Shown here: piece by piece, positions 46,963 to 64,000 of the stretch | Numbering within the stretch: position 1 is the first letter of the stretch | How the letters are laid out: each line of letters opens with the position of its first letter | DNA from: Trichoplax adhaerens | Lineage: Eukaryota; Animalia; Placozoa | Reading direction: 5' to 3' | Assembly: GCF_000150275.1 (NCBI RefSeq) | Contig: NW_002060953.1 | Location: 166,286 to 230,285, forward strand | Length of the DNA: 64,000 nt | Notes under the pieces: generated by a model | What the model was told of the DNA's origin: nothing | Database searches by the model: none | What the model saw: only the letters and a program-made list of their open reading frames with translations | Translations under genes and position numbers: made by a program

Positions 46963-48589
46963 CAAATACTGCCCTTCAATCAACATTCAACAATCACCTT
47001 TGCAGCTAATCGTGCTATTAATTATTGGTGAGTGTACACTGTACAGTATAGTGTACAGTCTATGTGTTCGATAAATTGTACTAACAGTACAGTAGATATT
47101 CCTGTTTGCCTTACCGAACTTGTTCAAAGTGTAACAGAGAAGGATATGCTAGAAAGTTGATACATTTACAAGTAGATTAAAATGCATCTTCCAGAGCTAA
47201 ACTAGATCATTTTTACGCAGCATATTCGTATCTACTTGTAGTAAATTAATTCAATATCCTGCAACAGATCCCTTGATGAATTCGAAATGTTGAAACACAA
47301 CACGTGTATAAATTTTATTTGAATTCCGCGTCAACACTCAGGATCATATTTGCTAGATGAACTGTGTCCTTGGCAATGAGACGAACGATGCCTATTAATT
47401 ACCTCTTTAGAAGTATTTGTTCATTTTATAGCAGATGCACAGTGCATGCGATATCACAGTAGCAAGGAAAATCAGTTTATAAGAAATAATATCACTGTAA
47501 AAGCATTCTAATGACAACCAAAATTAGTACGACGAGAATTTGATGTTTATTACCCCAATTACCACCAAACTTGGGGTTTTCAAACGGAAAATATTTCATG
47601 TAAACCTGCACAGGGATGTTACATTTTGTATCTTACAGTAAAGACAAAAATTAATAATGTATATTATAAGGTATACTCATATCGGTACGTATATCGTACG
47701 ATCACGCTTCGAACAAGACGTTCAATAAAGTTGAATTTGTTGCATATTCATGAAATAGCAAATTGCTTGAGATACTGTATAACCGCTGCGGAATATAGAG
47801 ATATATATATATATACAAAGAATGAGGTTACATCAAGGAAAGAACAAAAAAATCTGAAGAATGGAAAGAGCGCACAAAAGTCTACGAGCATGTTAATTTA
47901 AATTATAATTTTTATATAGAAGAACTGAAAGCTCTATTATTTCTAAGTTGATTCCGATGTGAGCGCTTAAAATGCTCTTGATACACTGCAACAAAACAGC
48001 GTACGTCATCGCTCAAACTCATTACGTTTTAATACAGTATGTGCATACTACAATACAGACAAGTAAATGCATTTAAACTTGATAGAATACCTGATAGCAT
48101 ACTTCAATAAATTTCTGGTCAATATAATACGCTATCGTTTCGAGTAAGATGTATGTTGTCTAAAGGTACAGTAATACTATCATATTTGACGATAAAATTT
48201 ATGGACTTAGCCATACACAATAAAGATAGAAGTAATTTAAAAATGCTAAATAAGCATCTGAATACTACATAGCCGAGAACTCACAGTCTACCTGCTCATA
48301 ATGAATAGATTTCATAAATACTAATCATCTATATATCCAAGGTATAGGACAAACTAAGCTACAAAACTGCGGTTAGAACATTTATTACTCAATACCATTG
48401 GAATGTTGCAGCAACAGAACTAGTGGTATAAAGTAAAATTAAAAATTAGAAAGCAACACGGCATAAAACGTGTATAGCGTCACCGGAACTTTGATATGTA
48501 ACATACTGATTTCGTGCTGACTTGGAAGAGATATCAGCAAAATTATGCATTATAGCAATGCTATTGCATTAACCACTCATTTTTTATTC

Positions 48590-50792
48590 TCAAATATTTG
48601 GTATTTCCTTTAGCGCTTCAGAATTGGAATCTAGTTGAAGCTTTTCACAAGCACCCGTTGACGAATCGCTACACTGGCTTGATGACAATGAGTCTGCCGA
48701 ATGAAGCCTCCTAAATTTTAATCGATTATCTGTTTCTCGGAGTGAATAGTTAATTCGCTTTAGAGACCCATTTGCTTGCTCTCTACGTCTCCTATAAATT
48801 GATATAGAATTCAGTGAGCTGTTTATGCCGTATACTAATATAGCTTACAACAACAATGCATACCCCTCTCAGTCTGTGATACTTTTATGAGGTACATAAA
48901 TTTAGCAGACTTCTCATTACGCAATGTCAAATTAAGATTTCTCACCGCTTACAGTATCAAGTAGTAGTACAATAAACAAATAAAAATGAAAGTAATAGTG
49001 TTCACTAGTTTAACTACTGAACATACGTATATTCCAATACATCCACGTAATCCGATATAAGGCTAAGTTTGCGCTAAGAGATATGAATAGCAGTAGCAAT
49101 ATACCTTTCACATGTCTCGCACTTGCAATCCTTATTGTTATCACCAAAAAAATTGTCACCGTAATAACAAGTAACTTCATCACCGGCCTTTAAATCGCGA
49201 AGAACTTTTACACAAGCTGTATTTCTACCGGTGGAGATAAACTGTATACAATCAATCCAAAAATAGATAGATATAAAATTAAGGCTCTTATTTCATGATT
49301 AATTCAGCGGGGTACGTCATTTACAATATTACCTTACAAGATGGTCGACAGTCTGGTACCCGAAAAAGAACAAAGTAATGGTTATAAACATCTTATTTAA
49401 ATTAAATGTTAATTTCTATCAGTAGCCAAACGTCCATTTTACAACTTAACTTCGAGTAAATACTAACTTGCGATAAATAGCAACAGCAAAGAAATAGTTG
49501 ATAAGCCCATCGTTTTACATTAGCTACTATTAAAACTAACCGTGATTGATGTAGGCCGCAGGCCCAAGCCACAACTGCGAACACTTCTTTCTGGTAGAAA
49601 ACATGATACTAAAATCATTCTCCCCGGGCAGAAGGAGACGCTTCTCTTCATCTTCTGTCATTTCAGCAATACAACCACATAGATCATGTATTTTGCTCGA
49701 TTTCAGCCTACAGTACAACAAGAATATTATTTATTTAAACCAAATCTAAGCATTAACTTCTTAGCAAGCGATGAACGAAATTTAATAATACATCTGCTAT
49801 CTTTCACTGTACAAGCTATAGTAGCTTTACGAGATGTCTTAGTCAAGCCATCATACCAGTAACGTAAGGTATGAAGTAAATGCCTTAGCAACGAGGTATC
49901 ATTTAAACTTCACTTTGCAGTATATTTAATTATAACAGAAGCGTGCTAATGCAATATCATACCATTCCGTTGTTACGCTTATCTTTGCTTCTAACTTTTC
50001 TGCAGAGTATCGCCTGACTGGCAAAATGCTGAAGCCACTATTTGGCGAAAAAACTCGTAGATAACGGCATAGCTATAGTTAGACAGAATATGATATTAAG
50101 AACCAAGGCACGCAGTAACTTTACAGCAAACACTACTTAGGCACAAATTAATCTGCAAATTGATCCCGCTCAAGTCTTAACTACTGAAGTTAATCATGCA
50201 AAGCTACTGCTATATGTTAGTCTTCATTTAGCTTGAGTACTAAGCAATAACTGCAAAATAGAACTGTATCATCACCTCATATTCAGCAAATTTATTAACT
50301 TTTGTACCAAATCTACAACTAAAATGATGATAATTTACACTATGCAAAACTTTCGTAAATTTAATATATAAAATTGACAGTTGATAACATTGCATAATCT
50401 ACTGAAAGCGGATAGTGAAATATACCTATTACCTAAAAGCTTCACAACAGTGCAATTATTATTTTAAATCAAATCAAGCAAAAGACTGAAAGAGTATTTT
50501 TTTAAATAATATTCAAATCAGTATTCCTTACATGCTCTTTGAAAAGTTGCTTTTGAAGCGGGTCCTTATTCATCAAATAATGGCATGCCCACTTCGTAGA
50601 TAAAATGCCATTACACGCTTCATCCAAATTGCCTGAAGATATGTACTCTTCGACGATACTTCGCAGCTCTTCTCTATTGCAGGTAACCCAGCGAAACTTG
50701 GGGTTCATCTTATGCGTTTTAAACCCAAGCAGAGGGTCAATAACCAGGCTGATCGCAATATCGTCGTATTCAGCTAATTGACTCGCTTGCAT
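48590..50792 (-). CDS. KMT5B: Histone H4K20 methyltransferase Suv4-20 (KMT5B/C), 6 coding exons, ~298 aa
   Basis: Exons 50792-50532, 50072-49963, 49707-49541, 49352-49333, 49241-49105, 48791-48590. Motifs: [68 protein letters not shown], post-SET CKCETCE, and [10 protein letters not shown]. Confidence 0.95.
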
Positions 50793-52424
50793 TGATCCGA
50801 TCAACACCAATGATTAGAACGTTGCCTCTAAAGAATTTGCGAAATCATCAATCGCCTCGGAGTTATGTGCCGGGGATCTATATAAGCGTGGCATGATGAT
50901 GAATACAGTATTAAGAAAAGCAAAATGATGAATATGCAACCTCTATTAAGTAATACTTAGAGTGCATCAAGAGTAAAGTATCCGCTTTAAGGAATTCAAT
51001 TACTAAGACTGCCAAACGAGGTCATTTATGTAAACTCTATGTGATTTTACAAATTCACGTGTACTGTACAGTAGTTGCTCCTTTTCTTATTGGGGCTTCA
51101 AGTAACAGTTGATTTGACTATAGAAGTTCCTAAATCATCAGGACCATACGCGTAGATGTGTATTGCCGTCGAACAGCAACGATTCGACCTGAATTCCCGT
51201 TTGCGATATAGGAATAAACTATATAGCCCTCCAGTCCTTTGTCTTCTTTTCGTAAATTATGTATTACAATATACGAGTACATGTAGTTTCTAATGGAAAC
51301 AGTTTCGATTCAATATTTTCCATTTATAAATTGTATATGTCACATTACGTGTAAATTTGTTAACGTGAGAATTTCCCAACAGTGCACGACTTTGCAAGGT
51401 GGCAACGATATTGCACTAATACGTTGTTCTGCACAATGAGTACAAACACGTCACCATCACACTACCCCGAATGGTTCTGGTGGACTCCTGGAAATTAACG
51501 AACTGTCTCTTTCATATCCTAAAGTAAATGTATCTAACGTACTCATTATTCACCACAGCAAAGGCCACTCCTAAGAGCCGATGAATAAGTGCATAATATT
51601 AAGTATTATTCCAACAATAAAAACGGCCGTAATACTATATACAAAAGTACAACTACTAGACACCAATTTTTTAATTATATCTGCTAGCAATGTCTCTAGT
51701 CAGTTTCAAAACATTGAGATTGTATAAGTTCAATGTTATCTGAAGATACTGAGTTCATTTTATTACAGTAGGCTTTGCAAATTATGATTCTATTTTATTA
51801 ATTAGTTCTTTCTTCAAATTGAATTTCAAATTTTAAATTTTCGGAGTACTGTGTCAAATTTACGCTACAGCATGTATTGTACAGTTATATTGCATAGTGT
51901 AGTATTAAACAATAGTAGTCAATTGATCGATTCCGAAGGAGAGATCAGTAGGACCAGGAACTTGTAAAAGCGTTCAATTTTCTCCTTTAAGGTACACAAT
52001 AAGTTATAAGTTATTGCCGTTATTACAACTGCGGAATGCCATATATATTTAAATTATAACGTATTATCTAATTTATCGCTGTCATTTACCGCTGTAGTTG
52101 GAAATGTTGCCAAATGAATCGTTGCCTGAGTGTTTCGATGTCTGTCTGAGCTAGCCTGAGCGCGTACTTTGAATAACGCTAAGTAATACACAGTACTAAA
52201 CTATTGCAGTGCCAAAATGACAGCATGTACAGAACCTAGCACACTTACAACCTATTCTACAAAAGTCATGGTTGTCTCATATTTTATTTTATAGTAAATC
52301 AATTCTTTCCTCACCTGAAAAGCTAAAAAAGCTCACCAAATTATTACTTTCGAATTTCACGATCTAATTAGCTGTCTTACTAGGCATCGCCAGTGATGGT
52401 TACTGTGACTTCTCTTTTCAGAAC

Positions 52425-52860
52425 TTTACACTATACTGTACTATACTGCACACTGTACAGTACTGCATAATGATTGATGAGAAAGCTATCTATCACAAGA
52501 GATTTCATGATTGGAATATTGTACTGTACAGTGTACAGTACAGTAGCGCTACAGTATGCCTCTAAGTATTGTACACTGTACACTGTACAGGACTGTGCAG
52601 TACTGTTACTCAATCGTCAATACTCAGTGTACGGTACAGTATGGTATGTGAGTCACAATACAGTCCAGTAGCGTAGAGTACTCCTGCAATACAATACTGT
52701 ACCTTAAACATGGTCCTGTACTGTACACTCACTGTTGACTGTGATGTCTGTCAATGTAATCACATGATCAATTCTCGTTGGATAAGATAGCAACATAATC
52801 CACCAATCAGAATGCGTTAGGATGATCGTTAATTTTTTCAAATTTGAAAAATTTTTTACA
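52425..52860. promoter_or_regulatory. Putative bidirectional promoter between Suv4-20 (-) and Spo12-like (+): TACAG/CTGTA cloud, CCAAT, palindromic double CHR
   Basis: Flanked by outward-facing splice donors (minus-strand CAG|GTGAG near 52314; plus-strand CA|GTAAGT at 53265). ATTGG at 52510, CCAAT at 52803, TTCAAATTTGAA at 52837-52848. Confidence 0.55.
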
Positions 52861-53929
52861 CCTGCTTTTACACCAACACGCCTCTAGTACAGTACTGTAA
52901 CTTGGTATGTCTATGATATCGTAGCCGAGAAATTATAACTTTGACTATCGCTGTTCCGTTCCTTACTGTATGATCGCTTCGTAGCTCGGTAGGGACTACA
53001 GTAGTGTTATTATTTCATGAAATACATAGAGTAAACAGAACAGAATCGAATAAATTCGATCGTCTCAAAGCAGAAGATAGTTGAACATTTTAGATAACAC
53101 AATCGATACATTGTGATCATTGTTTAGTACCGTACGCCGCAGTAACGTCAACCAATATTCTGTCATCAACATTACTCTTCCCATTGCCGACCGTCAATAC
53201 GGAAAGAATTGAAACACAATTTGGTGCATCGATTTTCTTCAACTCTATTTGAAAGCAATTATCAGTAAGTATCTAGTAAGTTTTTAATGTTCGATTTACT
53301 CGATGAATGAATTAATTCTATATCGCATGGAGCGAACACTGCATAGTGTATTGTACAAGCACAACAAGTCTGTTCATAAAGTCGATGGATTAATTCGTAT
53401 TCTACAATCGAATTGATCAAAGTATACTTGATCCATCAGTGGTCAGTATTATTTTCAACAACTGGACGAGTAAACCTTCTGATCTTAATTGAACATTTAC
53501 ACAATTTAAACAATTTCCAATAAACCTGATCCCAACCTCAAATTGCTTTATTTCAACCCATTCACGACACTACGTTCAATTTTACTATACTTTTCATTGG
53601 TGCTACCGAAATATAGTTTGCATGAACTTTACTAAAATAGATTCAAGATTAGTCTCAGATTGTTTACAGCACTCCGGTCCACTGATGCTAGGATATACAT
53701 GTATTCTTATAGTGCATCTTCAGATACATTGCTTGCAAAGACAAGTAATATTTAAATTTCTTCCAGTGCTAGTAGTTATGATGTTGAACTAATGTGTCAG
53801 ATAGTAACCGTTGGAATTTGAAAACTTATTAAGATAAATTACTTTCCAACACTCTTTTCAATCCCTCTATACTGTACACATATGTATCTCTTATAGATCG
53901 AAACGAGAATAAATTGAAATCCAGAAATT

Positions 53930-55075
53930 ATGGCTGAAATTAAAGATACAAAACCCAGTGAGCCTATACCGCAAGAACCAAAGTACAACATTCCCGCAGA
54001 AATCAAAAGAATTCAATCCAGCAAAAATGCTGACAAGTGGTATGCATCAGTAAATTGACTATATATGAAAGATAGCATATGAACTGCTAATGTTGATGCA
54101 ACCCACGTATATGTATTATGTACGTATAAGTATATTCCAAAACACTTTGTTCTAATGGACTACTTATAAGTTGGCATTACAGTCACATTATCACGCCAGT
54201 AGCGTATTGCATTAATAAATCATTTCCTAAAAAGCAGTAAAGAATGATTGATATTTGACTATGTTAGGAACGCCAAATATTCGATACAAAAGCAGCTGGA
54301 TAAGATATAATATAGTTATATCAATGTGATTATCACTGATGATAGAATTCAAGCAGTATCATCGTGCGATATGTATCCCTTTGTAATTAACATTGGTGTT
54401 ACAAAAGTAGTCGCAAAAGAAATAGTAGTCATACTGAAGCTCTATTACGAATCTAGAAAACTATGTTGTGCTTACAAACTTTACTGTACTGTACAACTGT
54501 ATATACAAATCTAAAATTAGTTGCCTACGAATAAGTTAATCATTTATCGCTGTATTAACCGAGTTCTAATCCAGTACAGTAGAACATTATCATTTCCTAG
54601 TATAATGCTGTCGGATCCCCTACCATGGATTATCACATTGAATGTAATTGCAAAGTACATTCTACATGTATTGGCAGACAGTAAATGTGAGAATTAATCT
54701 TCCTTATTATTGAAATTAGGGGATGCCTAAGCCCAACCGACAATATGATGTCACCTTGTTCTCAAAAGCTTATGTCGCGGAGAAAAGTTGCCATGCCTTT
54801 GTAAGCGTAGCACATTACTGAAATAGATTATGCCAGACTATATTGGATGCGAGTTTCATCTAGAACTGTGCTCGTCCAGTATTAGCATGTTTTATTGCAA
54901 TTATCTGGAATAAAATCCTTATGTATTAATTTGCTGATATTAATATTGAAATTAATATTTTGACGAAATTAGGAGCAAACGTGCTGCATTCCTAAGCAGT
55001 GCTCTAAAATATGAGCAGAGAAAGAAAGAGCTACAGCCTACCAATGAAACAGGGAAAGAAAATAATAATCAGTAG
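53930..55075 (+). CDS. Small Spo12-family-like protein, 3 coding exons, 97 aa, with a C-terminal KEN box
   Basis: Exons 53930-54039, 54720-54800, 54973-55075 (both introns phase 2, GT-AG). Protein: MAEIKDTKPSEPIPQEPKYNIPAEIKRIQSSKNADKWGCLSPTDNMMSPCSQKLMSRRKVAMPLSKRAAFLSSALKYEQRKKELQPTNETGKENNNQ*. SPTD-x3-SPCS-x-KL is the Spo12 signature. A likely 5'-UTR intron spans 53265-53896. Confidence 0.78.
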
Positions 55076-58000
55076 CTTATTCGTTCTACGTATTCCCTGG
55101 ATAAACTTAATTAACGTTTTTTCAGGCATCGCTTTAAAATTATTTTGAAATATCTGTTGAATCAATTTAAGTAATGTACAAAACAATCTACGGACTAGAA
55201 CGCGTATTTCCTGTACATTTGTCTTAAATAGTGCGGTTATATCGTAGTAAAGTTAACTCATAATAACACCATTAAAATAACGTTTGTTCGACCACTTTAC
55301 ATCCCTGCTATTTCTGTTTAACTTAAATGCACAAAATGAATAATAACGTACAATCTAGTGTGTATTTATGTATACTATCGCAATATTATATATTAATTAC
55401 TACGAATATGTAAGTATCATAATTCGTTAGAATTAAAGTCTACATGTAAATTAATTTCAAATTGATAAGAAATCCATTAATTTTACTTAGCTCAGGAAGA
55501 GCGGGAATCATTAAAAACAATTGTTAAGGTATTTTCTTTGCTTACTGTATGACCTCTTCAGAATAAAAATCATGCATGAATTTTGCTATAGATAGGATAG
55601 CAATTTTAGACCTATGAGATACAAAGTTGAGTAGCTGCAGTAAAAAATTACAAAAACCTGCGAAGTAAGATACAAATGAATAATAAATATCATCATTATC
55701 GGACAATATCCAATGATAATTATATCAGCATATGAGTATGTTGGCTTCTTTTGTATACTGAAATTACTTTCATGAAAGCATTTATAAGGAAATGAGGAAT
55801 TTAAGGAATATACGGTTGAATCGATTCTGTAAATTACTATAAGACAGCATACCCTGTCCAGATTAAACCATTTACGTGCAAAGAGCAATTTGCTTAAATT
55901 AAACAGGCATGGCAACGAAAGGTCAATAATACTTCATAATACTGCGATTGCGGAAAATAACGACTTTAAGTTAACGTCATTGTTAAAACGTAATTTGAAA
56001 ATAATGAAATCTTCACTCCACGTACAGCTAATTCCTGTGGCATTTAATTCCTGTTTCACTCCACAAAAGATACCTGTTACATAATTACATTAATTTATTT
56101 TACGTAAATTTTCTGTGAAGAAATTTCGATCGGAATCGTAATAAATCAAAAAAAGTATTTAATAAATAAATGTACGCGTGTATTAAAAATATTAAAAATA
56201 CTTTCATTGTCTCTATCAGAAAATTTAAGTTGATCGCCAACATTCGCTGACATGAAGCCATACTACTGTAGTATGCATTATTGCGATTGACTGTTAAAAT
56301 CGAAGCAGCTGCAATGATTATAATTGCAATTTACAATAAAAATAAAAAAATTGAAATTTGCAGAGTATCGAAACCTATCTATCAATAACGACAATTTTAT
56401 ACTGTTGTTAGAATTCATCGCGAAAAAGTAGGCGTGGATTGCAAAATAGATTGAAATTGTTCCGTAGTTTTATGACAAATACTCAATACTTTTCATCTTT
56501 TCCGATTTACTATCATCTAACAAACATCAACTGCCATCACAATCACGATAGCTTCTGAGAAAGCAAACTTCAGTTAATGAGCATTTCTCTTCAATGTCCG
56601 ATGTCTTTATCAAGAGCTCATATGAAGTGAAAAAGATGATGTTCAACTTTCTTATCGAAATGAGTTTCACGCAGAAAAAATAAATTAATTAATAGCTAAA
56701 CATAGTTGATATATCAACTGAAGCTATTGTTTTCATATAGTCAATTCCACGAAATGCGGAAAAAGTTTCATCACAATACTCAAAAATTTGGAATTATAAT
56801 CACGGTCGTTATCTATTCAAGTTGAATGAATATCGATTAATGAAGGATTTATTTTACGTATTTAATAATAACTCTATTGCACCCAAGAATTTCACTATCT
56901 AAGATATTGTTGAAAAGGTAAGGCAGATGTTGATGGCTATGTATAATACGTGTAAAATTAAGGGGTAGCATTCTGTCTATGGCTATACTAAGGCGTAAAC
57001 AGCCATATTGCAAGAACGTGTAGCAACATAATAAAATATTTCATGTTGCAAATAAAATACTATAAAAATTAGATAAATACATAGTTATTTAATATTATAA
57101 TTATCAGTAGAGCATTTGCAATGCTTTCCAGATTTAAAATTATAATTATAATTCAAAAATTAACGAAGATTGATAAGTATCATCGACTGAAAGCAAAACT
57201 TAGATACTCTGTAATTCTTTAGTTGGAATCTATAATAAATTATAGGTGACACAGCTTATACACCAATGTCATAATTTCAAGTCTGCGACAAGGAAACGTA
57301 GAGTAAAAGTCTATAAGTAACTACTGACTGAAACGCCCTTTTACTAAACGTTAAACACACATAGCGAAGTACCGTAAAGATAGAACTTTTATTAACGTAG
57401 ACACATCTATAATTTTTCACCACACAACTCAACTCAAACATTCCCGTTTATGTAGCAACCGTCTAATTTGTAAACTACAACAGTGTTATTATTATACCTT
57501 GCTAGGAGAGACATCTCGAATCTCGAATTGAGACGTTGCTTACACAGCTTTGCTATCCGTAAATATTTTTAATCTCTTATTCATACTTAATCTTAATCTA
57601 AGCATTTATGTTGTCTAATTCAACTATCAATAGCTAGAACTTGAATTATCTTCTACTATCTACCTATAATAACAGTTAATATAAAATATGTAATAGCCTA
57701 TCATAAATAGTATCCACGTTAAGGCCTTACTTATCTTACCTAGCACTACAAATACAGATACTAAATAAAGCTTACATCGTCTTTTTACATTATTTGTAAT
57801 TATTAGGTACTACCTTGACTTACTGAATGGATAAGCGAGAGTAAGAGTAATTTACGACCCTCGATTTGCCATAATAACTAAGTTTCTCAAACTCCATCAA
57901 TTTTATTTCTTTAAATACAACAATGCATTCTAATAATTAAAAATAGAATACAGCAAGAGTTCGAAGCCTATCTCTACGTACATACTAATGCTTTAAGATG

Positions 58001-61000
58001 CAATTTTAACAATAGCTACTATACGTAAGTTGTTTAAATGAATTCAGAAAAGCCCAATTGATAAATCGATAACTTTATTCCGAAGGATTAGCTAAACTAG
58101 AGTTAACTCCTGAAATTTGAATGCTAGCCTAAATTGCATTTCTTTACAATGCGGGTCACACTTGTAAGATTGATTTACTTGTTCAGCATAAAGCATTAAA
58201 TTCATGACGTAAAATATAGTACATTTCGATTCTTAAAATTAAAACTTACAAAATGTATGAATTTCTCCTAAACTTAAAATATCATACAGTTTTTCTGTAA
58301 TCCCAAAAACAAGTGCTATATATAATCTTCTGGCCCTAAATGCTAGCATTAAAAATTTCAAAATATTATCATTACAGAAATTATTTCAATTTTCACGTAG
58401 AAATCAATGAATAAAGTCAAATTAATATAGAAAATGGATAAGAGCTATATAAGTACTGGATAAATATTGATAAAACGTTCATTATATTAATGAAGGAGGA
58501 GGCTATTAGCTATAATTACGACCCAAGACATAGAATAAGTGTTCACGGAAAAATACTTTCAGGCAACACTCTATAACTTTCATGATTACTCGTATTGACA
58601 ATCAATAAAATTAACAAAGGATGGCATTGTTACTAGATAGATACTGGCAAAAGTAAAAAGATGAACACTTTAAAATGTTTTCACAATCATGACGTATCAC
58701 AAATTATATCCTATATTGCCTTTTAATACGTATTTCAGCTACAACCGAAAGTAGTTAAGGCATTATTAAATTCAATAAAGATAATCTGAATGCATCGAAC
58801 TAATTTATTTAGAGATAGAAATAAACAATAATTTTAAGTATTATTTGCAACCCAAAGGTAAAAAATGCAATACTAGCACTTCAAGTCGAACGGGATATAT
58901 TCTAGAGCTCAATAAGTTGCCATCTCGTAAACAATTATGATTTACTTTCTATACTTTCAATTGCTTACAATGGATTTGTAAACGATCCAAGTAAAACATT
59001 TAATTCTATATAAATTGTATAGAGCAGAGATTAATGCATTCCGCTATGAAAAAAGCATTTTTTATCTAATTTCCCCAGATGTAAAACATCATTTCTGCAC
59101 CAATATGGCGGTAAATTATTGAAATAAAAAGTCCACAACCATGATTGAAAATATTTCAATAAAATATATCGCAAAATATTAAATACTCAATCAAAAATTA
59201 AAGTCTCTTAGCATATATAGCAATAACACTAATATTATAATAGAATTAGAAATGCCATCAATACATAAAGTGACGAGATACAATAGTGACGCCACATACA
59301 GCTAACTGAATGTCTACTTCCTGCCTATTTTATCCATATCCAATTAATATCCATGCGAGACGAAAAGATCTAGTTGAACAATTTCAACTAATGACGATCA
59401 TCCTTTAAAGGCAAAATTTATTTTGGCGATAGGCCAAACACAGTGCAATACGTTGGAATATAAAAATCGATGCTTTCTAATAACTACTACTCCCATTACG
59501 CACTGCAACTACACAATTCACACGAAAACGATATAATATTAGCCGTAAAATGAACAGATCGTAATAAAAATAGCAGCCTAGTGCAAATTACCGTGTATCT
59601 AGATTTAAAAATTTTACGGTTTAATTATTTTGACTTCGTTCTAATTTCATCTGATCATTAGCTAACTACATCAAGGCATAGATCAATTTATTTAATATAG
59701 ATGCCATTACACTTTGAAACATTTGTTTTACTTAATTCCATTCGATAATCTTAATAGAATAAACGTCATGGTAAATAGATCATTAGCAAAACTTAGAAGT
59801 ATACTTATCTTACATAAATAAATAATTTTAGAAGTAAGAACTTTAATTTTAATCACTAAAGTTATTCGTATTCTATTATTGAAAATAATACCATACCAGC
59901 TACAATCAATATAACGATAAATTAAATTTATATAAGCAATAAAAGAAAATTTTTTATAGTACAGAAAATATTTTAGTAAGTATTCAGTCAAACTATTGGA
60001 TTTTCTGTTAGAAGCGTCCATTGTTTAGGCTTATAATACTTTGTGAAGTTTTTAAGAAAGCAAAAGCAAACGTTCTTTATTTCATTCATTTAAGTAATAT
60101 AATGCTAAAACAGGTAATTGCAAACGATTGTATGCAAAAATTACTGGAAACTAAACAACGAGAATATTATCAAAACAAAAAGTATAATTAAATCTTAGAA
60201 GTATACGTCAGATAACTTTTGCTCAATGAAGAGACTACAGTATCTAATTAATATTGAATCTATAAAAAATACATCAAACAAAGGTATCCTAAAAGTACAA
60301 CTGACGTTCTATCTCAGACCAAAGTAATGACATTACTTTCAAGACAAGTGGATGCGTTTACAGACGATTATTCCGAAGATAACTATCCGGATTGATCATT
60401 TATAACAAAAAATTCAATACATGCAATTGAAAAGGAAAGAGTAATTACGAAATTAAAAGATTTAGTATTCACTCTTTCGATCTTGCGAATAAATTTCAAT
60501 ATGCAAATTAAGCTGCTTCTTTCACTTCTTTTCATATATCTGAGCTTTTTATCAAATACTGTTAATCATCGACTATATATGATAAATTATATTCCCATTT
60601 TAAATTCCCTCAAATGTCGTTAGTAAGTCAATATTTTAACATGATCTTTCCGAAACTATATCATCTTGTCTGCAAAGCCTATATTAGAGCGTTATATAGC
60701 GACTTGCGACGCACAGTAATCGTAGACCATTATTGAAAATTGTCAATTATTTATGTACTTGTATTGTACATTATAATACACTAAGTAAAAAATGTCTCAT
60801 TGCTGTATTTATCATCTAGTCTTCGATTTACTAGCATGGAAGGATGTTATGAACTAATATCGAAATATTGCATGATACTTAAAAAGCTTACTAAAAATTT
60901 GATTTCAGTAATATTGCACGAAATTTGTTGTTGATTTTAGCATTACTTTCATATTATTTAGATCATAAAACTCAACGTTTTTTATAAACTTATCCAAACC

Positions 61001-64000
61001 ATTGCGATTACTATTTGCATATGTATTAGGCGTTTGTTTGTAAGTCAATTTAACTTTAAGGAAGAAGTACGCATTGACTGTAGCTTTTGCGATGGCAATA
61101 CAATTAGAAGTTTGAACTACGTAGCGGATAAAATACTGAAAGGGCTATCGGGGCGTACGTAAATTTGTCATTTCTCTCATTCTATATTTTTATAAAGCAG
61201 GCCTAAAAATTATACTTGTACTATCAAAATTTGATCACGGAATTTATTCGTGCTTTTGCTGATATCTATACCTTTTGAATACTAGGGCATAATCTCAGCA
61301 GTTAAATATGTCATGCAAGCACTAAGCCACTATTTTCAAATAGTATAACAAAACGTATTTGAAATGAATTTTTCGTATCTTACCGAAAGTATACCTGACA
61401 TTACAAAATGCGTGATTCTGAAGCTAAGATCAATATATAATTACTATATACGAGCCTAGCTTTTCGGCTTTAACTAAAACAAGAAAGCAATTTATTACGG
61501 TTAGTTTATTTAAGGTTGTTGTTTTAGATTCAATTGAGCATTGTTAACACATTCAAGTATCGCACGACTGGAATAGGGTATCTTGTTGAGCAACTTGATT
61601 TTAACGAATAAAATTGCAAGGTCTACTTACTATATACTATTAAGAGAAAAATTATTTCTTAAACAATAACTATAGTTATGATAATAACATTCCAGCACCG
61701 ATACGCCTAATCGTGCAATATTTTTTTTAGTGATATTACTGTGGAGCATTTGCTTTATTAGAGTTAATTGGTAATGTTGACTGGTTTAGCTTTTTAATCA
61801 TACGTACTATAATGAAATAAAATAATAAAGATGGCCATGTTATAGAGTAACATAAAACTTCTATTCGTAGTTATTTCGATTCTCGAATTATAAATTATCA
61901 TTAACTACAATTTGTTCTACATCTCAGTCTATTATGTAACTTCGGTACTTAGGGCCAAGATTGGAAATGTATTTACCGTTTCTGTTTCCGAGTGCTAACG
62001 AAAAGCAGCCATTATATATTGCAACTAATATATATGCACTATAAGCAAATAACTGTCTATTAAATCAGTATTATAAAATTACGATAAGGATTGTCGAAAA
62101 TATAACGTACTTAATCTAAATGCTTACGTTTACCCTTAGCACTGAGATAATATAATATGAAAGCAAAAATGTGGAAACAAATTAATTAAGCCGTAATATC
62201 AACAATTTTATATTAATATTATAGACACAATACTATCGTTATAGTAGTATTCGTGAGCATAGAATAGGAAAATTCTCCTTTATAACGTACAAAGTAAACC
62301 ATAACTAATAGATTTAATAGACTTTTAGATATTATTTTGTTTATATGTGAAATAATAAATTAAACAGAAACATACTGTTACAGTGTTATACACTGTATTA
62401 CAGTAGAAATATCAATGTTAGGATAATTCTATTAGACTATCCTTATTTAGTTAACTTCTAATTTGGATATACTGTATTTTAATATAGCACTGACTTTTTA
62501 TGACAGTGACACTTATACACATACTGAAATTAATAGTTATAATAGGGAATGCAAATCATCTGCTTACAGTTCGAATCATTGTGATTGTAATTTACTTATG
62601 GTAGACTGTAAATTATCATGGAAATGTTCCGTGATAGGACAAATCGTAATCTGACTATTCTGTATTAGTCATTACATGTCTATGTTCGTAAATACTGTTG
62701 TCTGCATTAAGGGAGCAGTAGCTAAAATTAATATCTAATTCAGTAAATGATTCTAATGTTAATTGTATTAACTATGACTCATGAACTATTGAGGAATAGT
62801 ATATAAATGCAGTATATAGTGAAATAAAAAAGAATTGTCCAACTTAGTGTTTAACGTAAAATACGAGGCGTTTAAGTCTTTGTGTAGTCTGCTAGTAGAG
62901 CAAAAGTGTTTGTGATAGTGCAGATATCGTTCCTTGATACGTGGTTCAAGGAATTGACTTATTGATCGTATATTGCGTTATCTTGTTGCAAAGCTGTTTT
63001 GTGACACATACATATCAACATATATATTTATTACTATAATAATAACTATTTACCTATAATAATATTGTTCGTTAAGAATTGTAGTAATGCAACTATGGAT
63101 AACTTTACATTTCTATTCAAGAGTGCGGATTAAATAATTTGAATTATCAATTGTAATAATGTTTAGTCTGGACCGATATTTTAAATTAAGGTTATTTGTA
63201 GACTTCGCAATAATTTACTACAATATAAAAGTGAGTTTCAGAGTAAATTTATAGGATTCGCAATAATTAAATTTAATATTATTTAATCCCACACGTACTC
63301 TTTTATCGGTACAGAGAGAGTCAATTATAGAAATTGCCCTAACAGCATCCTATCCATACTATGCAAGCAAATTAATGTAACTATCATTATTTAAAAGATT
63401 ATTGTAGGCAAAAATATCACAAAGAACATTAATGAAACTTACCATAAATAAATTAATAATTTAAAAAAATGTATTCAAAGTTTTAGAAATATGATGAAAA
63501 TTATGAACGATAAACTTTACTATTTTGTTTCATTAAAATTTCGCTCATGCAATGCCCATACAACCTAAGAATTAAATTAAGGTTAAAGACCACCCTCCTG
63601 CATTAATTATCTAGATTTTGATGCGCTGAAAATAAAGTATTTTACCCGATGTATAAACTATAGCCTCTGTACATTGTATTATATTCCAGAAGGACCCTCA
63701 ATGCAAATCAGAAAGAGGAAGTTTTCGATAGTTTCTTAGCATTGCAATTTTTTATTAATTTTTTACTTTATTTCTAGATACCACACTTTATTAGACATTT
63801 CTAAGTAATTTGAGTTTTTACCTTCAGATACTGAAAAAAGGATAAACTGTTTCAAAATTGGAAATTATTATAATAATTCTAATAAAGAAAATTATAGTAA
63901 CTTTTACTAAGACTAGCAATATTCATTTTGTTTCACTTCAATTTTCTTTTAACTAAGAAAAGGAAGGAACCTGCTTTCAAAATGAAAACCTCCTATACAG

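Follow-up and report, generated by a model that had tools for sequence, protein, structure and literature searches.

Spo12 has so far been treated as a fungal regulator. Its founding member, Saccharomyces cerevisiae Spo12, acts in Cdc14 early-anaphase release (FEAR; reviewed in PMC2605245). A different output, the inhibition of the phosphatase PP2A-B55 under activation by Cdk1, has been proposed only in a 2025 preprint, according to which Schizosaccharomyces pombe Spo12 has 90 residues, of which 46-77 form its domain and S47 and S54 are Cdk sites, is disordered with helices following its second SP site, is phosphorylated by Cdc2 and behaves genetically as a stoichiometric PP2A-B55 inhibitor activated by Cdk1 (bioRxiv 10.1101/2025.10.28.685054). 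In the same work, proximity labelling with TurboID showed that S. pombe Spo12 labels Pab1/B55 only with S54 intact, and AlphaFold3 placed phosphorylated S54 (pS54) on a basic patch lying between B55 and the catalytic subunit, and S47 in the active site; pS125 and S118 of S. cerevisiae Spo12, two serines cited there as essential, were placed in the same way (bioRxiv 10.1101/2025.10.28.685054). The preprint also describes Spo12 sequence homologues as hard to find in complex eukaryotes, for which it suggests FAM122A as a possible functional counterpart (bioRxiv 10.1101/2025.10.28.685054). Here we analyse a Spo12-like gene in the placozoan Trichoplax adhaerens, whose coding part lies at 53930-55075 in a stretch of 64,000 nucleotides (nt) of contig NW_002060953.1 (positions 166,286 to 230,285, forward strand), referred to below as the window. 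An earlier note, made from the sequence alone, had drawn attention to this gene, and its claims are taken up where the results bear on them.

Results

The Trichoplax protein carries a Spo12 domain

To place the gene, the Pfam Spo12 profile (PF05032; curated gathering threshold 20.5 bits) was compared with the exon at 54720-54800 alone, which scored 38.7 bits (E 9.4e-10), and with the full protein of 97 residues, which scored 35.2 bits with no other Pfam family reported; the profile check that the earlier note had called for was thus significant. When the whole 105.6-Mb genome (1,414 contigs) was searched in six frames, the Spo12-domain exon was the single PF05032 match (35.5 bits, E 1.5e-6), and the E-values obtained on the exon and genome-wide therefore place the motif far above chance. 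Full-length analyses were run on the public protein RDD37064.1, deposited as "hypothetical protein TrispH2_011148 [Trichoplax sp. H2]", which agrees letter for letter with our spliced model; a search for a second, differently annotated copy of 53-170 residues found none. As this identical deposited protein, a cluster of one, already has a precomputed PF05032 match, the suggestion of an undescribed system went too far. Compared by BLASTP with the 92-residue Spo12 family protein of Schizosaccharomyces japonicus, the Trichoplax protein is 41% identical over residues 1-59 (E 5e-10), so that the similarity takes in the N-terminus, and the ESM Atlas returned a feature score of 0.92 to Spo12 clusters of Ascomycota and Streptophyta. 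A phmmer search of 1.84 billion representatives with the 30-codon open frame around the Spo12-domain exon, a query too short for a database that large, returned only the Trichoplax protein and a metagenome protein with three motifs that is described below.

Within the protein, the core pattern S-P-T-D-x3-[ST]-P-C-x2-K-L is present from S41 to L54, where it reads S41-P-T-D-N-M-M-S48-P-C-S-Q-K-L54 and holds both SP sites (54730-54771, forward strand). Domain-only and full-length alignments, built from 18 metagenome exons and from 13 fungal-type proteins, 11 of them from named fungi, showed S41, P42, T43, D44, P49, C50, K53 and L54 as invariant columns. The two SP sites seven residues apart that the earlier note had reported are S41 and S48, the only SP/TP sites in the protein; their counterparts in S. 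pombe Spo12 are S47 and S54, and S48 corresponds to S125 of S. cerevisiae. A basic cluster, R57-R58-K59, follows the core, and K66R67-x12-R80K81K82 forms a pattern like a bipartite nuclear localisation signal (NLS). AlphaFold2 predicts helices at residues 49-56 and 64-84 and disorder elsewhere. The Atlas model has a predicted local distance difference test (pLDDT) value of 0.39, and its structural neighbours were discarded as meaningless, the model being disordered; the PDB held no match to the protein. Family-wide lengths and motif counts, here and below, refer to the best 120 of the 507 matches of a profile search, the Trichoplax protein included. Among these the length of 97 residues compares with a median of 129 and a shortest member of 58, and the size and central domain placement fit the family, at about 90-130 residues.

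The gene is transcribed, spliced and polyadenylated

Reading 53700-55300 base by base gave coding exons at 53930-54039, 54720-54800 and 54973-55075, with a GTATGC donor after 54039, an acceptor ending in TTAG before 54720, a GTAAGC donor after 54800 and an acceptor again ending in TTAG before 54973. Both coding introns are in phase 2, and the frame closes with TAG at 55075. Translated exon by exon, the 97-residue open reading frame (ORF) contains SPTDNMMSPCSQKL, SRRK, KR and GKENNNQ as the earlier note had given them. RNA contigs from four runs of four different studies were aligned on 53300-55700 (2,401 letters); being assembled contigs, they are informative on presence and splicing but not on how strongly or when the gene is expressed. 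Contigs of 4/4 runs carry the joints 54039/54720 and 54800/54973 (GT..AG), which provides the RNA-seq support that had been sought for both junctions. The same four runs join a non-coding 5' leader exon, ending at 53264 with a GTAAGT donor, to 53897, and the last 30 nt of the contigs' 5' extension match 53235-53264 exactly and uniquely. Of the three-exon, 97-residue gene proposed in the earlier note, the coding part thus holds and the exon count does not: the transcript comprises a non-coding exon and three coding ones, four in all.

All parts of the transcript lie on the forward strand. The leader exon (53126-53264) is exact at its 3' end and approximate at its 5' end, where contigs reach 85-139 nt upstream of the joint, and is followed by an intron of 632 nt within the 5' untranslated region (UTR; intron 0, 53265-53896, GTAAGT...TTATAG). 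Exon 2 (53897-54039) comprises 33 nt of 5' UTR and then, as contigs and translation show, codons 1-36 plus 2 nt. Intron 1 (54040-54719; phase 2, 680 nt, joint in four runs) ends 10 nt upstream of the S41 codon. The 81-nt exon 3 (54720-54800), running from part of W37 to part of L64, is the Spo12-domain exon that matches PF05032, and intron 2 (54801-54972; phase 2, 172 nt, contig joint) begins 35 nt past the first base of the K53 codon. The coding part of exon 4 (54973-55075) specifies the rest of L64 to Q97 and the TAG, including the predicted helix 64-84 and the bipartite NLS-like pattern. No ATG was seen in the known leader exon, and an in-frame TGA at 53915-53917, upstream of the ATG at 53930, indicates that the latter is the start; its context has A at -3 and G at +4. 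The 3' UTR (55076-55531) contains ATTAAA at 55510-55515, with cleavage near 55531, where one contig stops and continues into 22 A, 16 nt past ATTAAA; a contig of another run extends to 55620, beyond an AATAAA at 55562.

The Spo12-domain exon shares its downstream intron position with fungal genes

We next compared the exon structure around the domain with that of other family members. A degenerate DNA pattern for SPTD-x3-[ST]PC-x2-KL recovered 111 metagenome loci, about 94 of them distinct, most of which continue into the fungal tail KL-x-A-x-KKKHF-x-K. Counted from the first base of the K codon in KL, a GT stands at exactly +35 nt in 67 of these 94, mostly within a canonical donor (GTGAGT, GTAAGT, GTACGT or GTATGT); at the same nucleotide, Trichoplax reads TT|GTAAGC. 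Where the next exon was recovered, in 20-odd loci, it follows an intron of 38-60 nt after the +35 point and encodes (G/S)AKPVQLF or SKPQLL-x-R-x-F, the corresponding Trichoplax residues being S-K-R-A-A-F-L. Annotated genes of S. japonicus, Taphrina deformans and Psilocybe cyanescens likewise place a phase-2 intron at precisely this +35 point, a criterion that was defined in this analysis and is not published. Upstream of the core there is a phase-2 intron as well, 16 nt before the S codon in Psilocybe, mostly 13 or 16 nt before it in the metagenome loci, where the distances peak, and 10 nt before it in Trichoplax, in the same phase and one to two codons apart. In both groups the core consequently sits on a micro-exon between two phase-2 introns, whose length is 81 nt in Trichoplax versus about 84-87 nt in fungi for the micro-exon. 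With two introns and about 290 possible sites, the chance of the exact coincidence was estimated at <1%. Intron position and phase argue for common descent with fungal Spo12, not for a convergent motif. Taken together, the Pfam match, the BLASTP similarity to fission-yeast Spo12 and the shared intron position bear out the claim that the Spo12 signature in this animal gene marks a genuine family member, and the gene is almost certainly a Spo12-family orthologue.

A C-terminal KEN tripeptide recurs in the family

S. cerevisiae Spo12 is reported to be degraded via APC/C (anaphase-promoting complex/cyclosome) with Cdh1. In the Trichoplax protein, the tripeptide K92-E93-N94 (55055-55063, forward strand) is a candidate APC/C degron within the predicted disordered tail. 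By itself it is not above chance, as KEN arises in 7.6% of composition-preserving shuffles of the protein. Across the best 120 matches, KEN lies downstream of the domain in 22 proteins versus 3.1 expected by shuffling, about sevenfold, and upstream of it in none versus 0.4 expected. Its carriers (S. japonicus, Taphrina, Lipomycetaceae, a pezizomycete, several Agaricales and Trichoplax) are not independent samples and represent at least 5-6 lineages. The KEN box that the earlier note had pointed out at the C-terminal end thus stands where KEN recurs among the family, and this recurrence would lend the idea of APC/C control real, though indirect, support. KEN-dependent degradation of the Trichoplax protein is accordingly put forward only tentatively, at slightly less than an even chance.

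Distribution of the family

In the paper library searched, no paper was found that describes an animal Spo12, in agreement with the earlier note, which knew of no characterised one. Among the best 120 of the 507 matches of the profile search, made with a fungal-biased profile from the domain alignment, the named matches besides Trichoplax were fungi only, and the unnamed ones are fungal in type. A word-index protein search with the Trichoplax protein gave only itself among two candidates, the 5-mer index being insensitive to a 15-residue motif, and a related-locus search in metagenomes gave no relative of the Trichoplax locus. The supplement of a placozoan cell atlas contains neither 'Spo12' nor the locus tag (PMC10580291). 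The ESM Atlas holds Spo12 clusters in plants; if these are true kin, the family would be older than the opisthokonts. Outside the Pfam domain, fungal Spo12 proteins have motifs in set places, with QPLH in the N-terminal part, KP-x-x-L-F just past the conserved intron and ENPF at the carboxyl end, and another fungal group has QENTPP; such motifs may be further docking motifs. Among metagenome proteins in the ENA we also observed two proteins of 260-262 residues from a GC-rich organism that are close relatives of each other; one of them has three tandem Spo12 cores (C-x-SPTD-x3-SPC-TRALL) and matches PF05032 with 53.9 bits in three stretches. We know of no description of such a multi-repeat Spo12-core architecture.

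Genomic surroundings and variation

The window has a GC content of 32%. According to the annotation of Trichoplax sp. H2, a SET-domain gene lies on the reverse strand at about 48580-50810, divergent to the Spo12-like gene, and a Cor1/SYCP3-family (synaptonemal complex) gene lies beyond it, at or below about 45040, also on the reverse strand; at 50502-50810, the SET gene's first coding ORF resembles the N-terminus of KMT5B/SUV420H. Between the SET gene and the leader exon there is a dense cloud of TACAGT/ACTGTA repeats at 52420-52740, with more copies at 52720-52997; the density of these repeats across the window is about 1.3 per kb per orientation, and the leader exon begins at least 390 base pairs downstream of the cloud. 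Over the 10 kb downstream of the Spo12-like gene (window 55100-64000), no gene is called in the H2 annotation.

The H2 contig (GCA_003344405.1) is 98.5% identical around the Spo12-like gene, and its divergence is uneven, at about 4.7% (mostly indels) over 52700-53896, which comprises the upstream region and the 5' UTR intron, and 0-1% over the coding exons, introns 1-2 and 3' UTR (53897-56000). RNA contigs of three runs have in common 3' UTR variants at 55131, 55340, 55355, 55406 and 55498-55499 that are absent from the window and from the H2 contig, which agree with each other here. One run further shows C>T at 55037, changing P86 to S in the protein tail. The shared RNA variants suggest that the sequenced cultures include a third haplotype or strain.

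Discussion

The best overall explanation of these observations, to which we assign a probability of roughly 55%, is that the gene encodes a placozoan Spo12 orthologue that restrains PP2A-B55 in mitosis. The partners that this reading calls on are encoded in the Trichoplax genome: B55, with an exon that matches human B55alpha chains in the PDB (E 2.9e-22), and ENSA, as a separate gene with a canonical exon containing KYFDSGDYNM; N-terminal DSPn exons of Cdc14 are present as well. By analogy with fission-yeast Spo12, Cdk1-cyclin B would phosphorylate S48, and probably S41 too, at G2/M. The phosphorylated core and the helices that follow it would then dock between the B55 and catalytic subunits of PP2A-B55, and the docked protein would block the phosphatase stoichiometrically, so that Cdk1 substrates would stay phosphorylated in a direct loop of positive feedback alongside the Greatwall-ENSA route. 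On exit from mitosis, the Spo12-like protein would be dephosphorylated and perhaps destroyed by APC/C-Cdh1 through its C-terminal KEN box. Taken alone, the operation of the inhibitor mechanism in Trichoplax, an extrapolation from fission yeast, seems to us evenly poised between true and false.

Several observations weigh against this reading. Its mechanism comes from one preprint that is not yet peer reviewed and is partly based on AlphaFold3 models, and everything beyond a family member with conserved phospho-sites is inferred by analogy: phosphorylation, binding, inhibition and timing in Trichoplax rest on homology. Only positions 2-21 of the 35 in the PF05032 profile align, and in the basic K-K-K-H-F-x-K half of the domain (profile positions 22-35) HF.K is replaced by V-A-M-P. 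The protein also lacks the N-terminal (I/V)QPLH found in 88/120 of the best family matches and the KP-x-x-L-F found after the domain in 103/120, along with the C-terminal ENPF of 57/120. Given the missing HF.K, KP and QPLH stretches, the docking helices may differ; the fungal accessory motifs may on the other hand be a fungal speciality and not a defining trait of the family, of which the Trichoplax protein is, by its sequence, a divergent member. Its SP sites are minimal, with no K/R at +3, and the protein contains no RxL or LxF cyclin-docking motif. Near the 5' end, CCAAT and cell cycle genes homology region (CHR, TTTGAA) elements are about as frequent as in the background and show no enrichment, and they were rejected as a sign of G2/M transcription. 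As to descent, the full-length MAFFT alignment opens a four-residue gap after the basic cluster, and if it is right about four codons separate the Trichoplax intron from the fungal one, still in the same phase; the domain-only alignment is gap-free from S41 to P63, and we favour it because the nucleotide distance is identical. The comparison with Trichoplax sp. H2, the one relative near enough for it, yielded a single synonymous difference, and the two are too close to test selection.

Three other explanations were weighed against an orthologue that restrains PP2A-B55. The earlier note had framed the gene in terms of FEAR, and a regulator of that type would promote early-anaphase or meiotic release and activation of Cdc14 from a nucleolar anchor. 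The role of the founding yeast protein and the DSPn exons of Cdc14 in the Trichoplax genome favour such a regulator, as does the SYCP3/Cor1 meiosis gene about 9 kb upstream, which may be coincidence. We nevertheless regard it as improbable, since an exon-by-exon search of the genome found no match to the N-terminal domain of the anchor Net1/Cfi1 (PF10407), a weak negative, and since S. pombe Spo12 does not control the localisation of Clp1/Cdc14 (bioRxiv 10.1101/2025.10.28.685054). The preprint moreover suggests that the FEAR role may itself reflect inhibition of PP2A-Cdc55, which would make Cdc14 release a lineage-specific output of the mechanism favoured here (bioRxiv 10.1101/2025.10.28.685054). 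The FEAR frame is thus probably specific to budding yeast.

It is rather unlikely, but a good deal harder to set aside, that the protein is a true Spo12 relative whose function has diverged, so that it might act as a mere Cdk1/PP2A-B55 substrate, or as a small nuclear protein that works with some other partner, and not as a phosphatase inhibitor. The loss of the C-terminal third of the Pfam domain and of the KP and QPLH motifs would fit such a change, as would the NLS-like basic pattern at residues 66-82 and the finding of the gene in no other animal by the word-index search or among the best 120 matches of the fungal-biased profile search, which is consistent with a relaxed or altered function. 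Against this, the two serines retained in the invariant SPTD and SPC contexts are the very residues assigned by the preprint to the active site and to the basic patch, the R57, R58, K59 cluster and the helices after the second SP are kept, and the ORF is intact, with spliced transcripts in several studies. An absence of any homology, whether through a convergent or chance short linear motif or an untranslated transcript, appears barely credible. The significant match does span only about 20 residues, and the two Trichoplax lineages are too alike to reveal purifying selection; but Pfam E-values of 1e-8 to 1e-9, and 1.5e-6 genome-wide, BLASTP similarity that spans residues 1-59 with the N-terminus included, an intron identical to the fungal one in position and phase at an estimated chance of <1%, a protein size and domain placement that match the family, and a good start context behind an upstream in-frame stop all speak for a translated family member.

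As an expressed animal homologue that shares a fungal intron position, the gene implies an origin before the split of animals and fungi. It is possible, although we hold it somewhat short of an even chance, that Spo12, as a Cdk1-driven PP2A-B55 inhibitor, goes back at least to the opisthokont ancestor, and to early eukaryotes if the plant clusters are true kin, was kept with its exon structure in Placozoa and was lost or became unrecognisable in the standard bilaterian models. In that case Trichoplax would have two parallel brakes on PP2A-B55, Greatwall-ENSA and Cdk1-Spo12, and would open the Spo12 loop to study in an animal for the first time. The protein, already in GenBank as an unnamed hypothetical protein, is the first animal sequence homologue for the newly proposed Spo12-PP2A loop and a concrete one with which to ask whether that loop works in animal cells beside Greatwall-ENSA. 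This raises the evolutionary question of which animal lineages retained Spo12 and what took its place in those that lost it; practical value will be limited until biochemistry exists.

Among described systems, Spo12 of Schizosaccharomyces comes closest to the Trichoplax protein. The two are similar in size (90-92 versus 97 residues) and have a central domain, a SPTDN-x-MSPC-x-x-KL core with serines seven residues apart (S47/S54 versus S41/S48), disorder and helices after the second SP, and S. japonicus Spo12 further shares the phase-2 intron at +35 nt from the K of KL and a C-terminal KEN. Unlike these proteins, that of Trichoplax has no (Y/H)(Y/F)-x-K behind its basic cluster, no KP motif and no N-terminal QPLH, and its gene has introns of 172-680 nt versus about 50 nt in fungi and an extra 5' UTR exon. 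Spo12 and Bns1 of S. cerevisiae belong to the same Pfam family, PF05032, and differ in their Cdc14-release output, which is specific to budding yeast according to the preprint; no Net1 domain was detected in Trichoplax in the exon-by-exon search. ENSA/ARPP19 (Igo1) is, like the proposed Spo12, a small disordered phospho-protein that blocks PP2A-B55 (bioRxiv 10.1101/2025.10.28.685054), but it has no sequence similarity to Spo12 (its family is PF04667) and is activated by Greatwall at FDSGDY rather than by Cdk1, a site that is absent from the Trichoplax Spo12-like protein; with a separate ENSA gene in Trichoplax, ENSA and Spo12 would coexist there as they do in fission yeast. FAM122A/PABIR1, finally, is an animal protein that resembles the proposed Spo12 as a disordered B55-binding inhibitor; it has no sequence similarity to Spo12 according to the preprint, whereas the Trichoplax protein is a sequence homologue of Spo12 itself.

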